Shown here: positions 1-45,057 of the stretch, in pieces
How the letters are laid out: every line of letters begins with the position of its first letter
How positions within the stretch are numbered: position 1 is the first letter of the stretch
Assembly (NCBI GenBank): GCA_019828565.1
Contig: JAHDYR010000064.1
Coordinates: forward strand, 851,162 to 915,161
DNA from: Carpediemonas membranifera BICM
Taxonomy: Eukaryota; Protista; Fornicata
Direction of reading: 5' to 3'
Length of the DNA: 64,000 bases
Position numbers and translations under genes: made by a program
The notes under the pieces: generated by a model
What the model was told of the DNA's origin: nothing
Database searches by the model: none
The model's input: only the letters and a program-made list of their open reading frames with translations

Positions 1-2
1 AC

Positions 3-2499
3 TTCCCCCTGCCTAACACGCGCGAGTTTGTAGACCGAGCATCAGGCTGCAAATACTTTGCAGGCCTAGACCTCAGACAAGGCTACTACCAGATGCGGAT
101 GCACGAGGAAGATATCCCCAAAACCGCTTTTGTCACTCCAGACGCATACTGCGAGTTCACCAGATGTCCATTCGGCCTGATGAACGCCCCGGCGAGATTC
201 CAACGCGCCATGCAGAAGGCGTTCGCCGAGGTCCTCCACAAAGGGGTGGACATCTATCTTGACGACATCTTGATTTACGCCAAGACCGAGGCCCAGTTTC
301 TCACCCTGATCAAAACCGTCTTCAGGATCTGTAGACATTATTCACTGCGCCTTAAAGGCCCGAAGTGCACGATAGGCTCAGCACACGTCGAGGCCGTCGG
401 GTATATTGTCTCGGAGAAGGGGAAACAACTTGCCCCAGAGAAGGTAGAGGCGGTAAACGCCATACCGCTCCCGTCCACCGCAAAGGAGCTTCAGAGGACA
501 CTGGGATCATTCAACTATGTCGCCCAGTTCGTCCCGGACTCATCACGAATCCTCAAACCTCTCAACGAGATGCTAACGGCACAGGAGAACTCAAAGAACA
601 TAACTTGGAACCCCAAACAAGAAGAGGCGTTTACAACGTTCAAGGAGAGACTCAGCTCAGACACAGTCCTCCATTTCCCCGACTTCTCAAAGAAGTGGAC
701 CCTCGAGACGGACGCGTCGAACGACGGACTAGGGGGCATTCTGTTCCAAGAAGACGACTCCGGCAACCGAGAGATCGTCTCGCTCTTCGCAAAGTGTCAT
801 ACGCCAACCCAGACTAGGTGGCCGACCTACGAACAAGAGCTTCATGCTATCATCTTTTGTCTCACGAGACCTGACATGGCTCAACTTTTCCGCCTCAAGG
901 ACAACATACAGATCCGCACCGACCACCAGAATCTGGTATATCTCATGCAGAGGAAGGAGCTTTCCAAGAAACTCCTCAGGTGGACGTCTGTCTTGTCGGA
1001 CTACAACATTACGATCGAGCATATTGCTGGAGAGACAAACAAGATGGCAGACATGCTGTCGCGTATCCTTCCCCGAGGGGGACCTCGGGCCGCAGCTGAA
1101 CCTGCTAGAGGCGGAGGACGCCGGCCCAGGGCTGACCCTTGAGTTGATCCAGGCTGCCCAGGCCATGGCACCTGGAGTCAACTCGAGTCGGCTGGGAGAA
1201 ACTAGAGGGAGTATCCATCGAAAACTCGATCTACTTCAAGGACGGAGTGCCGATTATCCCCAAGGGAGAGACACGCGACAAGGCCCTTCGGACCGCTCAC
1301 CAATTTCATACGGGAGCAAATTCAACGTTCCAAGCACTCGCCACGTCTGCATTTTGGCCGGGGATGCTCTTGGACGTCAAAAAGCACATCAAGACGTGCC
1401 CCATTTGTCTGAAGACTCGCATCAAGGACTACTTTATCGCCCAAAAGGGCCAGACAAGACGCACCAGACCATGGGAGACAGTGGCAGTCGACACAATTGG
1501 CCCTCTCCCAACGGATTCGCTGGGCGCTCGCTACATCATTGTGGCTGTAACTGTGACATGTTTACAAGATACACCGAGCTCGTCGCAGTCGCATCGATCG
1601 ACGCCGAGACCTCCGCCAGGGCCCTATGGGACCACGTTTTCACGCGACACGGGATACCGGCGGAGATTCTGTCCGACGGCGGCCCGGAGTACGCGAACTC
1701 GATAGTTGAACAACTCACAACGTCATTGAAAGTCGCACACCACTTCACCATCCCGTTTCATCCACAGAGCAATGGTCTCGTGGAGAGAAGGAATGCGGAG
1801 ATTGGAAGACACCTACGGTGGCTTGTCCTGGCAATAGCCTACAAAGACCAGTGGTGCGGACTCTTACCGACGGTCCAGATGATTATCAACGGCACGACAC
1901 ATACGGCCACGAAGTTCTCCCCGCACGAGCTGATATTTGGCCATGAGCACAACATGTTTACAAGCTGGTGGACGAACGACAACAACTCTCCGATCAGAGA
2001 TTTCCCAGAGTTCAAAAAGGACCTGGAGCTGGCCCTTAACGCCCTGGAGACCACTGCCAGAGAGAGTGTGGGCCCGGGCCAAAAGACAATTATCAACACC
2101 GAACTGAAGCCGGGTGACTACGTCCTCTGGAAAGATGAGGCCCCTCAGAAGCTAGACGCGCGCAACAGGGGCCCATGGAAGGTACACGATGTACTTGATA
2201 ATAACAGAATAGTCCTGCAGTCGATACTCGACGGATCGACCAGATCAACCCACATTGAAAAACTCATGATGTTCGACACGGATGCCGTAACGGACACGAT
2301 GATGCTTCAACTTGCAAGCTTCGACCAGAAAAAATGGGAGGTAGAGCGAGTAGTATCGGTAGACTGGAAAGAAGGGACAGCCGCCATCAAGTGGGTAGGA
2401 TTCGAAAACATAACGGAAGAACCACTCTCGGGAGTGAAACACCTCGAGGAGATGAAGAGGTTGGCCCGTAAGGCGAGGAAGAACCTGAAACTCTACTAA
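3..2499 (+). CDS. pol: Gypsy A Pol (RT, RNase H, integrase, chromodomain), frameshifted
   Basis: CPFGLMNAP and YLDD; TDAS..TDH; H..H..CPIC; AVDTIGP, SDGG, GLVERRN; chromodomain WEVERV..IKWVGF; split over ORFs 93-1142, 1247-1705 and 844-2499. Confidence 0.92.
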
Positions 2500-2543
2500 C
2501 CATCTTTTTCCCCCGTTCCTTGCAGGTTGGGGGTTTTCTCATC

Positions 2544-2557
2544 AAAAAGGGAGGTAG
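2544..2557 (+). promoter_or_regulatory. Polypurine tract of Gypsy A
   Basis: AAAAAGGGAGGTAG immediately before TGTCA. Confidence 0.8.
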
Positions 2558-2639
2558 TGTCACCGGTCTATAAACTGCTCCGTCCAGTTTTGACCACTTT
2601 TACCCCGCTGCGGTTTACTGTAAATGATTTCAACCGACA
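2558..2639 (+). repeat. 3' LTR of Gypsy A (82 bp)
   Basis: TGTC...GACA inverted termini; Gypsy B integrase coding sequence starts right after. Confidence 0.7.
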
Positions 2640-3276
2640 CCGCAGTCGCTAGAATCCTCCGACCGAGCGAAAATGACTCGCCTCTTGCCTCAGCCTCAGC
2701 CTACATCACTTTACTTCGAGCCCACCTCTCCAAGTTGACCTCTAGGGCGGCCGAGAAGCAGCGCGAGACTGTAGACAAGCGCCTCGCCAAGGCCAACGCC
2801 GACCGCCAGCCGACTAGCTTCAAGGAAGGCGACCTCGTCCTGCTCAACCGGACGAAGACCCCAAAGCTGCATGGCTTCGCCGGCCCGTTCAAGATTCTCC
2901 CCATCAAGGACAACAACACCCTTCAGCTGGTCGACCTTTTCGAGAGCGCCCCCTTCATGGCTCACGTAGACCAGGTCCTTCCTTTCAACACCAAGTCGGG
3001 GCTCAGCCGCCTGAAGAACCTCGCCGCCTCCGACGAGCAGACGTACGTCGTGCAAGGCATCGAGAAGCACCGTCGCCGCAACGGCACACTGCAGCTCCTC
3101 GTCTGCTGGGAGGGCGACTACGATCCCACATGGGAACCCGCTGACGGGCTCCGCCACGTCACTGCGGCACGTGACTACCTCAAGTCCCACAAGCTCAAGC
3201 TTAAGGGGGGTAGGATGTCATAAGGCATCCACGTCCGCAGTTTATGTAAATGTTCCAATCTCTTCGCCCCGGCACA
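2640..3276 (+). mobile_element. Gypsy chromovirus family B 3' end (integrase C-terminus, chromodomain, PPT, LTR)
   Basis: FKEGDLVLL..GPF and YVVQGIEKHR..VCWEG..TWEP; stop at 3223; PPT AAGGGGGGTAGGA at 3203-3215. Confidence 0.88.
3216..3276 (+). repeat. 3' LTR of Gypsy B (61 bp)
   Basis: TGTCA directly after the PPT; ends GGCACA where family C sequence begins. Confidence 0.6.
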
Positions 3277-3731
3277 GGTCGACTGTGTCGGGTACACTTG
3301 GGTGAGCTTAGAGAATGTGTCAACTACGACTAGTGCGTGCCGGAGTGAGGGGTGACCATCTGTAGTGCGTTTAATTGATATTTTAGTTTTAACCCTTTTC
3401 CCCACCGAGGGTTGACTCTTTAAATCACTTCCTCTTCATCTGGGTTGCACCACACCATCTAGCGGACCAATGTGGTCCATTTGTACCACTTGGAAGGGGT
3501 ATGTCCCAGCCAATGCATGCGGGTGCTGGCCGACGGGTTGAACGTTCAGACGGGTGAGCTGACAGACTGGGCACTCACTTACCCATTGTTGGACGTCTTT
3601 GTGGAGACCCGGCCAAGATTGTCCCGCATTCGCGATGCGACGGCAGGTGGCGCGAACACCGAGGTGTCCTGCTGAACCGCCATGGTGTGCCTTGAACGTC
3701 TCGCGCTTGTTGAGCGATGCTTCTGCAGTGC
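3277..3731 (-). mobile_element. Integrase fragment of Gypsy family C
   Basis: Essentially identical to about 26613-26968, apart from the solo LTR inserted in it. Confidence 0.92.
3361..3454 (+). repeat. Solo LTR (94 bp) with CCATC TSD
   Basis: TGTAGTGC...GCACCACA flanked by CCATC at 3356-3360 and 3455-3459; absent from the other family C copies. Confidence 0.9.
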
Positions 3732-3772
3732 AGGTAAGGTAAGGTAAGGTAAGGTAACCTTACCTTACCTTA
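3732..3772. repeat. Head-to-head (GGTAA)5/(CCTTA)3 telomere-like junction
   Basis: Pentamer tracts joining two truncated, unrelated retroelements. Confidence 0.85.
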
Positions 3773-5713
3773 CTACGCATCGGTCCTGGCGCCCATCGTC
3801 GACCTCACCAAGGCAAAAGTGCCGTTCGTCTGGGGCAAAGCCCAACAGCAGGCCTTCGAGGAAGTGAAGCGCCTCATCATGCGCCGACCGATCCTCGCGT
3901 ACCCCGACTACTCCCGGACGCTCATCGTGCGTACCGACGCCTCCACCGCCGGTTGCGGCGGTGTTCTCCTGCAGGAGAAGGACGGTGAGGAACAAGGTAA
4001 CAAGTCATCGCCTACACCTCCCACCGTTTCACTGAGGCCGAGCAACGCTGGAGCACCATCGAACAGGAGCTCTTTGGCGTGTTCCATGCCATCATCAGCT
4101 TCGAGCATTTCATCCTAGGGCACCCCTTCGTTGTCGAGACGGACCATCGGAATTTGACCTATCTTGAGTCCACCACTACGCCTAAGCTCGTCCGCTGGCG
4201 CCTTCGCCTCTCCGAATACGACTTCACGGTCCGTCACATCGCCGGAGTCAGCAACGAGGTGGCCGATTGCCTTTCCAGATGCCTGACGATTCGCTCACAG
4301 CGCGTGGCATCCCCGGTGGACATTGCCGACCAGGTACGGCAGCTTTTTGGCAAGTGCCACAACGCCCGTGTTGGACACATGGGCGCCCGCATCACGACGG
4401 ATCGGATCGCCGCCCAGCTACCTTCGTTTGCCCGCAAGGCGATCGAGAAACACGTCAAGCCCCTAGTCCGTACATGCCCGGTGTGCCAGCTCACGCGACA
4501 GCGCGCCAAGGCCAGTGTAGACCTCCCTCGCCAGCCCACAATGGCACCGTACCCCATGCACACCTGGGCCGTGGACTTTATTGGCCCGTTCCCGGAAGAA
4601 CACGGTTTCCGTCACATCCTAGCCGCCGTTGACTGCTTCTCCCGGTTCGTGGAGCTAGTTCCCACGCCCGATTGCACCGCGCAGTCAGCGGTCACGGCCA
4701 TCATGCAACTGGTGGGCCGCTACGGATGCCCGGCACACATTCGCTCTGATCAGGGCCCCCACTTTACCGCCCACCTGTTCGCTCAGCTCTCGCGCATCCT
4801 GAACATTCAGCACGACTTCACGCTCCCGTACCATCACCAGTATAACGGCATCATCGAGCGCCGCAACAAGGAAGTGAACCGCCACCTCCGCGCCGCCATG
4901 AACGAGCTGACCGATGATTTAGCCGACTGGGTTGCCTGTCTCCCGCTTGTACAGCGCACTCTGAACTGCACGCCGTGTGCAGCCACCGGCAACATACCCC
5001 CGGCCAACATCATGTTCGGTAACCTCACCGACACGGACCGAGTACTGCTACACAACCCGGTGGAGGGGGTGGGCGACGTCGCATTGTACTACGACAACCT
5101 GCTTGAGGCACAGAGACAGCTTGTCAAGGCCGTGCCAGTTCCTAGGCCACGTCCGGTCACCCAGACCACTTTCACTGTCGGCCAAGCTGTTGTGGTCACC
5201 AGGCCCGACAATGCCCGTGGCCCCTCTCGTCTGAGCCCCATCTATATGGGCCCCTACACCGTAGCCTCCCTCGACGGCACACTCGCCACCCTCACGAATC
5301 TTCGAACTCGTGCCGAAGAGACGTATGATCTCCGCCGCCTCGTTCCCTTCCTCGGCGACTACACCCCCGACGACCTCACCGCCTTCGCTGCCGCCGGTGA
5401 GCAAGAATACACCGTCGAAGACATCATCGACCACCGCTCTGGTCGTACCAAGACCCGTTTCCGTTTCCGTGTCCGCTGGGCCGGCTACGGTCCCGATGAC
5501 GACACCTGGCTTCCCTATGCCGAGGTCCGTGACCTCGAAGCCCTCGACCGGTACTTGTCGAAGACCGGCATTCAGCTGTAATAGAGAGGGTAGTGTGGTG
5601 AGGCGCAGTTTAAGGTTTTGGTTTTTGACCATTTTTCACCACTGCGGTTTCCAGGAGTAAATCAGTTCTCATCCATTAATTGGAAAGTTCCCTTCAAGGC
5701 CAAACCAAGCACA
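3773..5713 (+). mobile_element. Gypsy chromovirus family D, 3' half (RNase H, integrase, chromodomain, PPT, LTR)
   Basis: TDAS, ETDH, GHMG..CPVC, AVDFIGP, SDQG, GIIERRN, YTVEDIIDHR..VRWAGY; stop at 5581; PPT AGAGAGGGTAG at 5583-5593. Confidence 0.93.
5594..5713 (+). repeat. 3' LTR of Gypsy D (120 bp)
   Basis: TGTG...CACA after the PPT; family C sequence resumes at 5714. Confidence 0.8.
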
Positions 5714-39603: not shown

Positions 39604-40146
39604 ATCTCTGACGGGAGCTAGTGGCTGGGAGAGCTAGGTAGGGTGGGGCTGACACGCGTTACAACGGCAGATGTAAGCCACAACAGACATTCTTTGACGC
39701 GGTCTCTCGAGGAGACGGTCGGTTTGGGCTCGCAAGCGTGCCTGCAAGCCATTCCACTATGCTCGTTGCCGGTGGGATATCCCCGTTGGGTAGAGCAAGT
39801 ATGTCTAGAGGCTAGGACAGCTAGCTGGCGTTACATCGCGCTGACAGGTTACCTCGGGTAACGGGCCGTGAGCGGAGGGCAATGAGATCGCCTCGCTCCG
39901 GCATGGTGATGCGCCGACCAGGCGAGCCGCGCAGTTTATGCGGGCAGAATGGTAGAAAATTCGGAACATCCAGATCCGACGGCACGATACTGGTCAAGAC
40001 CGGTATATCCGCCCAGTAGGTAAGCTGGCCGGAGTCCCCTGATCGTTTACACTAGCTCTCTTCTTTAATAAACGATCGCCCCCCGTTGGGTAGAGCAAGT
40101 ATGTCTAGAGGCTAGGACAGCTAGCCAAGCGAATCAAAAGAAAATG

Positions 40147-40219
40147 TGGACGAGCTGGGATTTGAACCCAGGGCCTCGTGCATGCTAAGCACGCGCTCTA
40201 CCAACTGAGCTACACGCCC
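40147..40219 (-). tRNA. tRNA-Ala(AGC)
   Basis: GGGCGTG..CGTGC-TTAGCAT-GCACG..GTTCAAATC..CGTCCA, G3:U70 pair, TTTT terminator. Confidence 0.95.
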
Positions 40220-40220
40220 T

Positions 40221-43200
40221 TTAATCATCTGAAAGAACGTTCTTACCGCGCGCAGAGGGTCAGCAAGGTGGGGGTCCCTAGTAGAGCTCGTGGGTTATGT
40301 AGTCGGAGTCGTAAGCCTCGGCGGGGTCGCTTTCGGGAAATCGAAATTTTGCACATGTGCAAAAATCTCGGATGTCTCGACTGGCTCGACTACGACGCCT
40401 CTCTCACACGCGAAGGGCACACCACAGTTAGAGCTGTGCCACGCGGCACTGCTCGCGGTAGTCACGGATGACCGCCGCGTTCCCAGCCCACACAGCCAAG
40501 ACGACCCGACTGCGCAGGTCCCGACGGACCTCCGCGCTCAGACCGAGCCTCTCGCACAGACGCCACACCCAGCACGACTTGCGGTCCTCGGGGTCAGCTC
40601 TCGTGTTGCCAACGAGGTCACAGCTGGCCGCGATGAGCTCGCAGTCGAACCTCGAGTACTGAGCGGCCTTGTCACGGATCCCATCCTTGATCGACTGTGA
40701 GACGACCACATCGACGATCATATCGCCGTGGAGGGGCGTTCCATCAGCTGACGTTGCCGCTAGCATGAGCAGATCGGCCTTCACCTCCGTCGGGCCCGTC
40801 CCGTTGGGCATGTAGGCCATACTGGTGTGATCCAGCGGAACCTCGCGCCGTTTGGGGACGAACTGCTCCGAGCAAACGTCGTAGATGGCGTCTCTGACGC
40901 CGTTATGACGCTCGATCCGGGCACCGCCCTTGAGGCGAACACAAGAGAGTCCATGAGACCAATCCGCAACAGATCTGCCGCACAGGGGGCATGGTTTGGC
41001 TTTGTCTATCACGTAGGGGTCAAGAGACAGGTGTAGGCGGAGAATTGCAGTTGCCAAATCGGAACCCGAAAGAACGGGATCGAACGGCGTCAATGTGGAC
41101 ACTGCACGCACATAAGGCTCAGAAATAAACGATCTCTTCGCCGTAAGCTCCTTCTGCTTGAACTCCCGCACTTTCGTCGTCAGTTCAAACTGCGGAGTCG
41201 AAGTCTTCCACTTCTTCAGGGCATCCACGTCCTGCGGACCACCAGCAGCACCAACCGCCTGAAATGCCTCATTGGGCACGTTCAGTGAGATGTTTTGGTC
41301 AAAGAGCTGCTTCACGGCACCGAGATATGCCGCCGGCCACACGATGGACGGAATTCCCCATCCAAGACCTCCCTGCGTGATGCTAAGGCCCGCTCTTTCG
41401 AGCGTACCAATCACTGCATCGGCACCAACGAGGTTGGAGAGCAATGGAACGAGCGTCTCCTCCTCAAAGCGACGCCCAACGCCGACGAGGTCGGACGTCG
41501 GGCACACATTGCGGTAGAGGTGCGACAGTTTGGGCAGCAGGCACGCACGCGTCATGTTGTTAGCGACGATGATAGACGTGGGCCCTACGTCTGCCACCAT
41601 GTCGCTCACGCGTCCAGCCTGCTCGCTGACGCCTTCGAACTGCCTGCAGACCTGCTCCTTGACGTACGCAGCCGGCCCCACCGGCGTGCCCAGGACCTTG
41701 AAAGCCTCGCCGCGCGGCGCAAGCGAGGATTCACTGGCCACTAGGCCCAGCCCGGCGATGACAGTCTTCTTCTCGTTGACCTTCAACCCGACTCTGGCGA
41801 AATTGGACGTCGCGGTCATGATGACCGTGTTCGTCTCACTCTCTGTAGCGTCCTTGGGCATCAGGCAGTAGACATCATCCTGATAGGCATAAAATGCGTA
41901 GTTTGGAAACTCGGTCCGAAGATCGTCCAAAAGGGGCTTCATGCCGCAACTGAACAGCAGCGGGCTCGTAGGATCCCCTTGCGGAATTCCTTCGAGTGAT
42001 CTGAGGACCATCCCGGTTGCTGAGAACAGCATTGGATCAAGCAACATCAGTTCGAGGTACTCGGAAAGCGACGGGCAGTATGCAGCTGTCGCATCGCGAA
42101 GGTGAGATCTACTCATGCATCCATATGCGTTGGTAAGATCCAAAGCGATCACCTGACCGCCGCCACGATGATGCTCCCTCACAAGATTGGTTAGCTCCTC
42201 GAGCCCGCACTTCTCGCCGAGGCCATACTGACCCGGCAACGCCTTGTCGTCCCGCAGCCGGGCAGCAGCCTGACGAACTGCCACCTTCGCTGCGAGACGA
42301 CGAAGGCTGTCGCCTATTGAGACGGGGCGCGGCTTGCCATCCTTCTTCGGGATCGGCACAAGGATGCAGTGGGAAAATGGCTCCAGGCAGGCGACGCCCT
42401 CGAGCATATCCTCGAGCAGGGGCACAAGAGCCGCGGCGAGTTCATTCCACCCGATGGCCCGGCCCATCGCCTTCAGATGAAGGTAAGATAGGCCTGAAGG
42501 ACCCGGTGCGGACTCGGCGTTGAGGCTCTTAAGTGCCTTCTTCACCGCAGGGACAGTCATTTGGCAGTGGTTCAGTGTGGACGCGGGACCCGACACTGCT
42601 GCCAGCCGACTACCAGACGGCTGCACCTGGCTCTCACAGAGCCTGGCCTCCACCCACGCGCGATCCCCAGCGAACTCTCCGGCGGAGAGAGCTTGCGTGG
42701 CGCGAGAATAGAAGCCTCGTTGTCCCAACCTGAGTGCGCGCGCACTGGCTTTCAGCCGGGGCTGCTCGGTGGTCCGCTCCGGAGGAGCATAGAGACCCTG
42801 CGCGAAGGTCAAGATGCGGCGGACAACGTCGGGCTTCCCGTGGGCCGGGGCTGCGGCGTACTCATTGAGCAGCGCGACAAAGCTCTTCGCCCATGCCAGT
42901 CTGGCCCTCTTCGCGGGGAGCAACTTCCCCACAAACATGGCGCTGTGAGCTGGCAAGAACGGCTCGGGGACACTGCGCTGGCGTGCGGCCCCATCAGGTA
43001 CCCAGGTCACCCGGGGCGCCGGCTGCGGGACTGACCCGAAGCAGGCCTGGGCGATCTTGGCAACCACCGGGGGCAGCTTGGTGAAGATCCTACCGCCGTT
43101 GGGCAGGACTGGCAGTGTCGACCTGACGGTCTCGGGGACAAAGCCCCTCAATGCCTCACAGAGCTGCCGGAGCCGACTCTGGCTGAATCGACCCGTGGCC

Positions 43201-44225
43201 GACCCACGGTTGGACTCGTCCATAAGGGCCCGGACGAGGGCTGGGTCGCACAGGGTGGCCGTCACCTGCTCTGGAGTGGTCCAGTGGTCGGCGCGCATGG
43301 CGTCGGGGACCCACTCGTCAAAGGTGGCCCTGATGACAGCAGCAGGGCTGCTGTCCGAGCTCGAGCTCGGTTGCGTGGGTGCCGAGGTATCCTGACTAGA
43401 GGCCTCGCCCCCCGGTGCCGTAAGGTGACTCAACACCTACAACTCTGTCGACCAGGGCAACGGCACCACCCGCCTCAGATGTCTGGCCGCCTGCACGTGG
43501 TGGCTCCGGAGAGCGCACAATCACTGCGGCTGGCCTCGTCTGAGACGGGCTGGGCGAGGCATTCTCCGGCCCGGCCAACTCGGCGGGAACGGACGGCGGG
43601 GAGTCCGGCACGGCCAACGATGCCTCCTGGGGCACACTAACCGGTTCGGCCTGAGTTCCGCTGGCATCAGTCGGACTATCCGACGGCAGGAGGCCCATTG
43701 TGTTGATTGGGCACCCCATGGAAAGCAACTCGTCGATCAAATCGTCTCTTTTACTCTCATGAAGAACGCTCTGTGTGCCAGAGGAGTCCAGCAGCACTCG
43801 CGTGTCGAGCTTGAGAATAAGGAGACGAAGAGATGTCGGAGAAAGCTTCATCTGTTCAACGTGAAGGCAGATGCGCTCCAGACCAGCGGATATCCGGTCA
43901 ATGGAGTCCTTTTTGTCGAACAGGACAGGATGAGCGTTGAATAGCGGCGACAGGAAGTACACGATTTCGTTCGCGACGGCGACGTTGAAACGCTTGCTCT
44001 TAGCGCTGGCATCAGCAGTAAATAGCATCGAGATAACGTTCTTCGAGCACAATGCTCGTTTGAAACGCTGTCTTGTCGACGCATGTTCCCGCATTAGCGA
44101 CGGCGGCACATATCGAAGCAAAGTCGCACGGAGGAACGCGAAAATCGCGTCTGACGGCTCTTGAAGGGTGCTTACAACGCCTCCGGAAGCTAAAGCGTCC
44201 TGGATTGCGCTTTTGGCAAACTTCA
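40221..44225 (-). mobile_element. CRE-like non-LTR retrotransposon (RT + REL endonuclease) inserted at the tRNA-Ala 5' end
   Basis: 15-bp TSD TGAGCTACACGCCCT at 40206-40220 and 44226-44240. Confidence 0.9.
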
Positions 44226-44226
44226 T
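40428..44226 (-). CDS. Single ORF (about 1265 aa if the G6 run near 43410 is G5): RT, CCHC, restriction-like endonuclease
   Basis: SAPGPSG, RPVSIG, QYGLG, LDLTNAY, GIPQGDP, YQDD, GGLG, CPLC..HGLSC, RHN, KADL..VDV..K..Y. Confidence 0.9.
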
Positions 44227-44240
44227 GAGCTACACGCCCT
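44226..44240 (-). repeat. TSD = duplicated tRNA-Ala positions -1 to +14
   Basis: AGGGCGTGTAGCTCA on the minus strand. Confidence 0.9.
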
Positions 44241-44259
44241 GCATATCATCGATATGTAA

Positions 44260-44929
44260 GCTATCACGCCTCGGGCGTGGCTCACGCCCCTGACACTGCT
44301 GGGTCAGGGTGTGTCAGAACAGGATTCCGGGGACACGAGAAAGATGGCCAAAATATTTAGAAAATCTCGAAAGATATGATTGTGGATACGGTCTTGATCC
44401 GTCCCGATCGCGAGCAGATCGTATCCCTCCAGCAGAAACCGTGAGGATGGCCGAAGGCGACGCGGATAACGCTGATCCGCCGCCTGTCACCATGGAGAGC
44501 CTTGCTGAGCTCATACAACAGCAGCAGAACGTCATTACGGCACTCCGTTCGGAGGTTTCATCGGTTAAGGACAGTACACGGGACCCGAGACGCCCGTCTC
44601 GGATAGGAGCCGTTGCTAAGGAGTACGACCACCTCCGCGAGACACTTGCCGACATCAGAGGTATCCTCAACAACCCGGAGATGACGCGCGTCAACCAGAT
44701 CGAAGCCGCGATCGAGGCGGTCTTCGAGCGCAGACTCGAGTTCCTACGGCTATATGACAGCCACTCCGACACCGCTGCGCGCTACTTCATGGCTATTTCG
44801 AGAGAAGAACGAGACGCGCAACGCTTCGTAGTGCTGGCGGCCAAGGCCACTCCACCGCCTCCTCGACCCAAGCGGTTCCAGAGAGGCTTCGGCGGCTTCA
44901 GCCGCAACTCTCCCCGCTTCAACAAAAAG
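44260..44929 (+). mobile_element. 5' part of YR retrotransposon 4 (gag-like ORF from 44447), cut by LINE copy 2
   Basis: ORF resembles the other gag-like ORFs (E..HL, RRLEFLRL.D, AAKA, basic tail); left boundary approximate. Confidence 0.65.
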
Positions 44930-45057
44930 AAGAAAGAAAGAAATTTAACGTATCCTGTACACCTGTGTAAATCAGGGAATTACCAGTTTGCACCACCCCA
45001 TGTCCCCGGGAACGCCTTAGCGTGTTGACTTCCCTTCGTGAGCGAGCCTGATACTAC
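44930..45057 (-). mobile_element. Extreme 3' end and tail of LINE copy 2
   Basis: Reverse complement of about 18001-18128. Confidence 0.93.

Follow-up and report, generated by a model that had tools for sequence, protein, structure and literature searches.

An R2-type retrotransposon that very probably targets only the 5' edge of the tRNA-Ala(AGC) genes in Carpediemonas membranifera

Introduction

How can a mobile element enter a tRNA gene and leave the gene complete? The question is raised by a 64,000-nucleotide (nt) stretch of DNA (the window) from the protist Carpediemonas membranifera BICM (assembly GCA_019828565.1, contig JAHDYR010000064.1, positions 851,162 to 915,161 of the forward strand), on the minus strand of which a retrotransposon without long terminal repeats (non-LTR) lies between the first 14 nt of a tRNA-Ala(AGC) gene and an intact copy of the same gene. 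The original prediction for this locus, made from the sequence of the window alone, was a CRE-like retrotransposon that inserts sequence-specifically inside the tRNA gene and regenerates it. The analysis reported here leads to an answer that we hold with high confidence: the element is very probably an autonomous R2-type non-LTR retrotransposon with a single ancestral open reading frame (ORF), specific for the 5' edge of the tRNA-Ala(AGC) genes of C. membranifera. Genome-wide searches covered the C. membranifera assembly of 24.2 Mb in 69 contigs, which was built from Nanopore R9.4 and Illumina data (PMC8516963).

Results

Junctions between the element and the tRNA gene

Read along the minus strand, the terminus of another repeat was followed by 15 nt, the 4,005-nt element, the same 15 nt once more and the remainder of a tRNA-Ala(AGC) gene (Table 1), which was called by both ARAGORN and Rfam (67.4 bits). 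The two 15-nt copies were identical and equalled positions -1 to +14 of the tRNA gene, which places the insertion point after A14, where the D-loop begins within the A box. The gene downstream of the element retained G3:U70, and its U6-U67 mismatch is common to the unoccupied tRNA-Ala(CGC) genes. At the other side of the duplication, the element 3' terminus (...GATGATTAA) met it directly, without poly(A).

The base after the upstream 15-nt copy was T, the first base of the element, and that after the downstream copy was G. The junction was uncertain by one base per side: the element may start with A or T and end in ...TTAA or ...TTAAA. Because of this ambiguity at each side, the target-site duplication is 13-15 nt long. 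The duplication of tRNA positions -1 to +14, the 14-nt tRNA stub before the 5' end, the intact tRNA after the 3' end and the absence of poly(A), all of which had been predicted, were thus recovered by repeat comparison, ARAGORN and Rfam, with the predicted 15 bp to be read as 13-15 nt.

The 5' junction contains the ATG that opens the ORF. The proposal that this ATG is formed at the junction stood in that the ATG spans the junction and is where the ORF begins; the borrowed target base proved unnecessary, as the A can be assigned to either the target or the element, and the ATG may therefore be wholly the element's own. A reliance on a start codon supplied by the target, also suggested at first, is unnecessary for the same reason, and a sister element on tRNA-Thr (described below) has its own ATG 2 nt inside. 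No known ribozyme or other RNA, HDV-like (hepatitis delta virus-like) ribozymes included, was found by Rfam at the element ends, where it reported the tRNA only, and the predicted fold of the 3' untranslated region (UTR) was not unusually stable (z = -0.88 for the Ala element and -0.11 for the Thr element).

Occupancy of the tRNA-Ala(AGC) genes

A DNA search of the genome recovered nine copies at 99-100% identity, eight of them spanning element nt 1-4005, together with fragments. The 15-nt stub preceded all nine element 5' ends. Twelve element 3' ends were found, 11 of which were followed by the 15 nt and, behind these, by a further copy or the remainder of tRNA-Ala; the last 21 nt were common to all 12, except for one A/T variant. 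From the side of the target, a tRNA search showed that every tRNA-Ala(AGC) gene (6/6) carried the element in front, and that all six genes were intact and identical to the tRNA of the window. The element was absent from the three other tRNA-Ala genes, two with the anticodon CGC and one with TGC, the CGC genes differing from AGC by a single base among the first 14 nt. Genome-wide, there was neither a full-length copy at a non-tRNA site nor a copy longer than that of the window. With all genomic copies collected and their flanks checked, the expectation that insertion is sequence-specific, falls at the tRNA 5' end and spares the gene was thus borne out. Moreover, eight copies sharing the same first base, and none longer, rule out that the window copy is 5'-truncated with a chance ATG: its 5' end is real.

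The copies were distributed over the six loci as one copy each at the window locus (C63) and C48, one copy at C26 (5'-truncated at nt 82 and without stub), two copies at C8, one 5'-truncated partial (from nt 3446) plus one copy at C6, and four copies at C68 and C4 taken together. Four of the six loci were arrays or partial arrays, in which the copies were spaced by exactly 15 nt, i.e., by the stub. The 3' junctions of the two 5'-truncated copies were precise. Beyond the tRNA terminator, the sequence was distinct at five of the six loci, with C6 and C26 alike over the first ~20 nt; because these flanks differ, the six loci represent separate tRNA genes and not one copied segment. The lack of terminal repeats, the precise 3' junction and the presence of some 5'-truncated copies are features consistent with target-primed reverse transcription, and, as judged from sequence, the element has probably been active recently.

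The array on contig C68 stopped at element nt 2699 (L010 position 4198), where it met one terminus of a DNA transposon with CATACTGT ends; beyond the other terminus of this transposon, the array on contig C4 began at nt 2698 (L012 position 1500). The two contig ends appear to be one locus, at which the assembly was broken inside the transposon. In one of the C8 copies (215775-219769), a stretch of ~200 nt within the Pro/Ser-rich linker (element nt 562-767) was rich in substitutions and indels, with the remainder ~99% identical; a separate fragment on contig C67 (243410-243735) was 83% identical over element nt 634-937. Both observations hint at a second subfamily and at mosaic copies.

The encoded protein and its reading frame

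In the window copy, a 276-amino acid (aa) frame that starts at the junction ATG overlaps a 1,002-aa frame. This two-ORF appearance, as it had first been read, arises from one extra G in a G-run (43408-43413) that is unique to the window copy; the eight other copies have G5 and read through there. Because the two frames merge without this private G, the ancestral element is best reconstructed as having one ORF of about 1,280 aa. A programmed +1 frameshift between two ORFs is ruled out, the extra G being private to the window copy. For the protein analyses, the two ORF pieces were searched apart, and natural copies, not a consensus or a repaired frame, served as the reference.

Several lines of evidence indicated a protein of R2-type architecture, with a reverse transcriptase (RT), a CCHC zinc knuckle and a restriction-like endonuclease (RLE), as predicted from sequence and models: i) Pfam detected RVT_1 in the second ORF piece (E = 6e-17) and reported no further domain; ii) in an alignment of 26 sequences, the CCHC residues, RHN, the D of K-A-D and the D of D-V-x-V were kept C-terminal to the RT; iii) a profile built from this alignment matched the R2Tg protein in PDB at 1e-50, and when R2Tg was aligned in separate parts, both the RT (1.3e-33) and the knuckle/endonuclease (4.9e-13) were matched, LINE-1 ORF2p being matched by the profile in the RT region only; iv) the top seven PDB fold matches of an AlphaFold model built on the same alignment (predicted local distance difference test score, pLDDT, 81.9; predicted template modelling score, pTM, 0.78) were all R2 proteins, with 890-990 alignment columns, template modelling (TM) scores of 0.47-0.58 and 14-17% identity. 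The element thus combines a non-LTR RT with a CCHC motif and a PD-(D/E)xK-type endonuclease C-terminal of it, as RLE-bearing elements do, and no AP (apurinic/apyrimidinic) endonuclease was reported by Pfam in its protein. The RT domain confirmed the predicted identity as a retrotransposon, and the element carries an R2-type endonuclease.

The first ~170 aa are helical and are followed by a disordered Pro/Ser-rich linker, the helices being taken from a single-sequence AlphaFold model of low confidence (pLDDT 45). This N-terminal part belonged to no Pfam family, and a look-up with a language model gave generic helical-repeat neighbours only. Nor did Pfam find an R2-type N-terminal zinc finger or Myb domain, although with so poor an N-terminal model a Myb-like fold could escape. 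Relatives of the N-terminal domain (27% identical) were found in other tandem arrays with a period of ~3.98 kb, located on C39 (757-813 kb), C44 (14-27 kb), C24 (282-340 kb), C7 (403-408 kb), C6 (1.26 Mb) and C42; these arrays are probably further site-specific families.

A sister family at the other end of tRNA-Thr(AGT) genes

A protein search of the C. membranifera genome revealed a large number of paralogous families (32-36% identity), which are often arranged in arrays, among them arrays on C65, C52, C54, C26, C11 and C47. One of the families, 35% identical to the Ala element, is inserted in antisense orientation at the last base of tRNA-Thr(AGT). In its array on contig C39 (29000-38999), units of 3,434 nt each contain one intact ORF of 1,070 aa, starting from nt 3; the unit ends in ...ATAAAAGTT and is followed by 12 nt that match, as reverse complement, the final 12 nt of the tRNA; behind these stands either a further unit or the remaining part of the tRNA. 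The target duplication of this family is thus 12 nt, and its copies stack in tandem. All five tRNA-Thr(AGT) genes found carried the element tail right after the discriminator base, and this tail provides the TTTT run. These junctions suggest that the priming nick would fall exactly at the gene boundary and the second cut inside the gene, which would be rebuilt beside the element 3' end. The Thr family is therefore the mirror image of the Ala family, at the tRNA 3' end.

Outside the genome, a library-wide HMMER search found two full-length relatives, P0005 and P0006 (35-36% identity); the matches that followed were C. membranifera paralogues and then thousands of distant RTs. In a quick tree, which held no named references and had an arbitrary root, the Carpediemonas families, P0005 and P0006 formed one clade (Shimodaira-Hasegawa-like approximate likelihood-ratio test, SH-aLRT, 100) with a long branch and deep internal splits. 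No tRNA was present on the contigs of P0005 and P0006, where the flank was too short to reveal a tRNA target. The contig of P0006, the closest relative outside C. membranifera (GCA_002919055.1), also carried, beside a Ty3-type polyprotein, an ORF (L037 3291-4853) in which RVT_1 was accompanied by a weak match to Dam methyltransferase. Similar Dam-carrying retrotransposons are reportedly described in a 2026 preprint that lists Carpediemonas.

Proposed mechanism and alternative explanations

From the junctions of the Ala element, we infer the order and position of the nicks and the part of the tRNA gene that is recognised. The protein would recognise the tRNA-Ala(AGC) gene and place a nick at -2/-1 or -1/+1, just beyond the gene boundary, in the antisense strand; the freed 3'-OH would then prime copying of the element RNA from its ...GATGATTAA end, i.e., target-primed reverse transcription. 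The sense strand would be cut after C13 or A14, 14-15 nt deeper into the gene, where the D-loop starts within the A box, and this stagger would duplicate the first 14 nt of the gene. In this way a complete tRNA gene would be rebuilt at the precise 3' junction, with a dead 14-nt stub remaining at the 5' junction. The insertion would be harmless because its 3' junction coincides with the boundary of the gene, and what it would otherwise cut off is covered by the duplication. Moreover, the rebuilt gene would again be a target, and such reinsertion would account for head-to-tail arrays with exactly 15 nt between the copies.

Several observations weigh against this account: i) the genome offers no empty tRNA-Ala(AGC) site for comparison; ii) the 12th element 3' end (contig C63, position 20872) lacks the last A and abuts another repeat with no tRNA, in a copy that is itself disrupted by other insertions; iii) unequal crossing-over may have enlarged the arrays in part; and iv) each copy in the assembly has one or more private indels and at least one frameshift. 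These changes, the private G of the window copy included, may be assembly errors or real mutations, errors being conceivable because many lie in homopolymers and the assembly is Nanopore-based.

A history without recent retrotransposition, in which segmental duplication, gene conversion and unequal crossing-over of tRNA-Ala loci spread a single old insertion, would fit the near-identity of the copies, each with a frameshift in the assembly, and the surroundings full of shared repeats, where unequal exchange can grow arrays. We regard it as highly improbable: the six loci diverge both ahead of the stub and right past the tRNA terminator, the two 5'-truncated copies begin at different element positions, the private differences are mostly the homopolymer indels expected from Nanopore errors, and another family in the genome shows the same precise geometry on another tRNA gene (Thr). 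Least probable of all is that the tRNA is cargo, a read-through transcript of stub, element and tRNA down to the TTTT terminator having been retrotransposed as a unit and the six genes being element products; such a unit would explain why six identical tRNA-Ala(AGC) genes are each attached to an element and why similarity between loci stops at the stub on one side and right past the terminator on the other, but it meets array copies spaced by a 15-nt stub and not by whole tRNA genes, a composite unit without outer duplication, a stub flank at C8 that ends in GGTCCGC as does the flank of an unoccupied tRNA-Ala(CGC) gene (which suggests an old tRNA-Ala upstream region), and a Thr family that is antisense to its tRNA and cannot carry the gene in a sense transcript.

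Transcription of the element

The 5' leader was 0-1 nt in the Ala element and 2 nt in the Thr family, and the heads of the arrays differed in upstream sequence. Because the leader of the Ala element is at most one base, transcription would either start at the element's own first bases or proceed by read-through from upstream. The simplest account may be an internal start that yields an mRNA almost without a leader; in Giardia, a relative, mRNA leaders are normally very short. Read-through by RNA polymerase III (Pol III) across the whole element is unlikely, as the sense strand contains five T-runs of at least 4. A further conjecture, which we consider doubtful, is that the element families have become the fixed context of their tRNA sets, the Ala genes receiving their upstream sequence from the element 3' end and the Thr genes their TTTT terminator from the antisense tail, so that host expression and element survival are co-adapted and RNase P, cutting at +1, could make the 3' end of the Ala RNA from an element-tRNA co-transcript.

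Other repeats at tRNA genes

The flank GATGATATGC upstream of the stub is the terminus of another dispersed repeat (Table 1). Of the four array heads that are visible, three had the end of this repeat at tRNA position -2. The base adjoining that end was variable among copies (T in 10, G in 16 and C in 3), which places the A at -1 outside the repeat. The fourth array head (C8) had a different flank, ending in GGTCCGC, and the same 7 nt stood before an empty tRNA-Ala(CGC) gene; the C8 stub had one extra A between GGTCCGC and G+1. The resemblance of the element 3' end to a native upstream flank, which had been noticed at first, did not hold, as this flank belongs to another repeat and is not native DNA. 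Mimicry of a native flank by the element 3' end is likewise ruled out; the two ends have GATGAT in common. The ORF of the dispersed repeat (window 44309-45025, plus strand) belonged to no Pfam family.

A second repeat terminus (contig C63 20844-20871; 40 matches genome-wide) abutted the Ala-element 3' end that lacks a tRNA, and directly adjoined the first dispersed repeat at the two checked sites, on C54 and C11. It seems that another mobile element uses the same spot just upstream of tRNA +1. Furthermore, a repeat end containing GCTAGCTGTCCTAGCCTCTAGA was located a few dozen bases downstream of several tRNA genes (window 40080-40145; L007, L028, L030 and L034). The tRNA genes are hubs for several transposon classes in the C. 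membranifera genome.

Table 1. Parts of the tRNA-Ala(AGC)-associated element and its flanks, with positions in the window.
Feature	Position	Strand	Evidence or remark
Upstream copy of the duplication (stub of tRNA-Ala(AGC), -1 to +14)	44226..44240	-	Same 15 nt before 9/9 element 5' ends
Retrotransposon body, 4,005 nt (each end uncertain by 1 nt)	40221..44225	-	DNA search and copy alignment
First ORF piece, 276 aa: all-alpha N-terminal domain (~aa 1-170), then Pro/Ser/Ala-rich linker; ATG spans the junction	43396..44226	-	ORF translation
G6 homopolymer with one extra G, private to the window copy	43408..43413	-	G5 in the other eight copies
Second ORF piece, 1,002 aa, with an N-terminal extension, the RT, a thumb/linker region, the CCHC knuckle and the restriction-like endonuclease	40428..43436	-	Pfam, profile and fold
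Reverse transcriptase core (Pfam RVT_1, aa 362-583)	41688..42353	-	E = 6e-17
YQDD motif of the RT core	41874-41885	-	Within RVT_1
CCHC zinc knuckle (C-x2-C-x8-H-x3-C)	40941..40991	-	C816, C819, H828 and C832 nearly invariant in the 26-sequence alignment; aligns with the R2 knuckle
Restriction-like endonuclease motifs (RHN, K-A-D, D-V-V-V, S-I-K)	40683..40910	-	Alignment; match to the R2Tg C-terminus, E = 4.9e-13
3' UTR, 207 nt, ending in ...GATGATTAA, no poly(A)	40221..40427	-	Sequence
Intact tRNA-Ala(AGC); its first 14 nt and the preceding base (40206-40220) form the downstream copy of the duplication	40146..40219	-	ARAGORN and Rfam; identical to the five other tRNA-Ala(AGC) genes
End of a separate dispersed repeat, outside the element, abutting tRNA position -2	44241..44931	.	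At least 40 copies, 97-99% identical

Discussion

Site-specific R2-type retrotransposons are current models for RNA-templated insertion at safe sites, and the well-studied ones destroy the gene copy that they enter. A staggered cut at the gene edge that rebuilds the gene would allow every copy of an essential tRNA gene to be occupied without cost. Together, the Ala element and its sister families would offer i) a natural series on the retargeting of R2-type proteins, including to the opposite end of a gene; ii) a system for asking how the spacing of the nicks is set; and iii) a test of whether the host depends on Pol III flanks supplied by an element. They also document a transposon group in a deep-branching and little-studied eukaryote, a free-living protist. 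Full-text searching of the literature found no paper that describes these Carpediemonas elements.

RLE-type non-LTR elements on tRNA genes are known from earlier work: NeSL-1_TV on tRNA-Pro in Trichomonas, LIN15_SM on tRNA-Arg and LIN25_SM on tRNA-Glu (Kojima & Jurka 2015, PMC4640811). Like these, the Ala element is an RLE element confined to one kind of tRNA gene, and the host of NeSL-1_TV is also a metamonad. However, LIN15_SM has its published 3' junctions within the body of tRNA-Arg, which leaves a truncated gene (PMC4640811 S6 Fig), whereas the Ala element would cut at the gene edge and restores the full gene. Target duplications are found in CRE and R4 elements, including all known CRE elements, and target deletions in NeSL elements (PMC3636483); unlike NeSL, the Ala element shows a target duplication (13-15 nt) at every copy.

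With the CRE clade (CRE1/CRE2, SLACS and CZAR, which reside in spliced-leader RNA genes), the Ala element shares a mostly single ORF with RT and RLE, an insertion point that is always the same and close to the start of a small-RNA gene, and a target-site duplication on insertion. CRE elements mostly have one ORF and usually end in poly(A) (PMC12278014), and by their RT, GilM and GilT of Giardia, a relative of Carpediemonas, belong to the CRE clade (PMC10088271). The genome annotation names one C. membranifera paralogue after SLACS. The label "CRE-like" is plausible; the RT tree held unnamed relatives only. Unlike CRE elements, the Ala element targets a Pol III-transcribed tRNA gene and not a spliced-leader gene or telomere, has no poly(A), and makes a duplication that rebuilds a working gene.

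The likeness to R2, which serves as the model of structure and mechanism for this class, extends to the best profile and fold matches in PDB, a single ORF, the absence of poly(A), a precise 3' junction, and a CCHC motif and PD-(D/E)xK-type endonuclease C-terminal to the RT. On the other hand, R2 interrupts and inactivates 28S genes, while the Ala element targets a tRNA gene and leaves it whole; moreover its N-terminus is predicted to be an unrelated all-alpha domain, and no HDV-like ribozyme was found in it by Rfam.

Harmless insertion near tRNA genes is also practised by TRE5/TRE3 of Dictyostelium and Ty3 of yeast, for which multicopy Pol III genes are a "safe haven". These elements use an AP-type endonuclease or an integrase, are guided by Pol III transcription factors and insert at a variable distance outside the gene. 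The Ala element differs in being of RLE type and in cutting, as its junctions suggest, at a fixed base inside one specific tRNA sequence. RLE elements specific for tRNA genes are as such already known, and the rebuilding of the target gene by an edge cut plus duplication would be the new variation.

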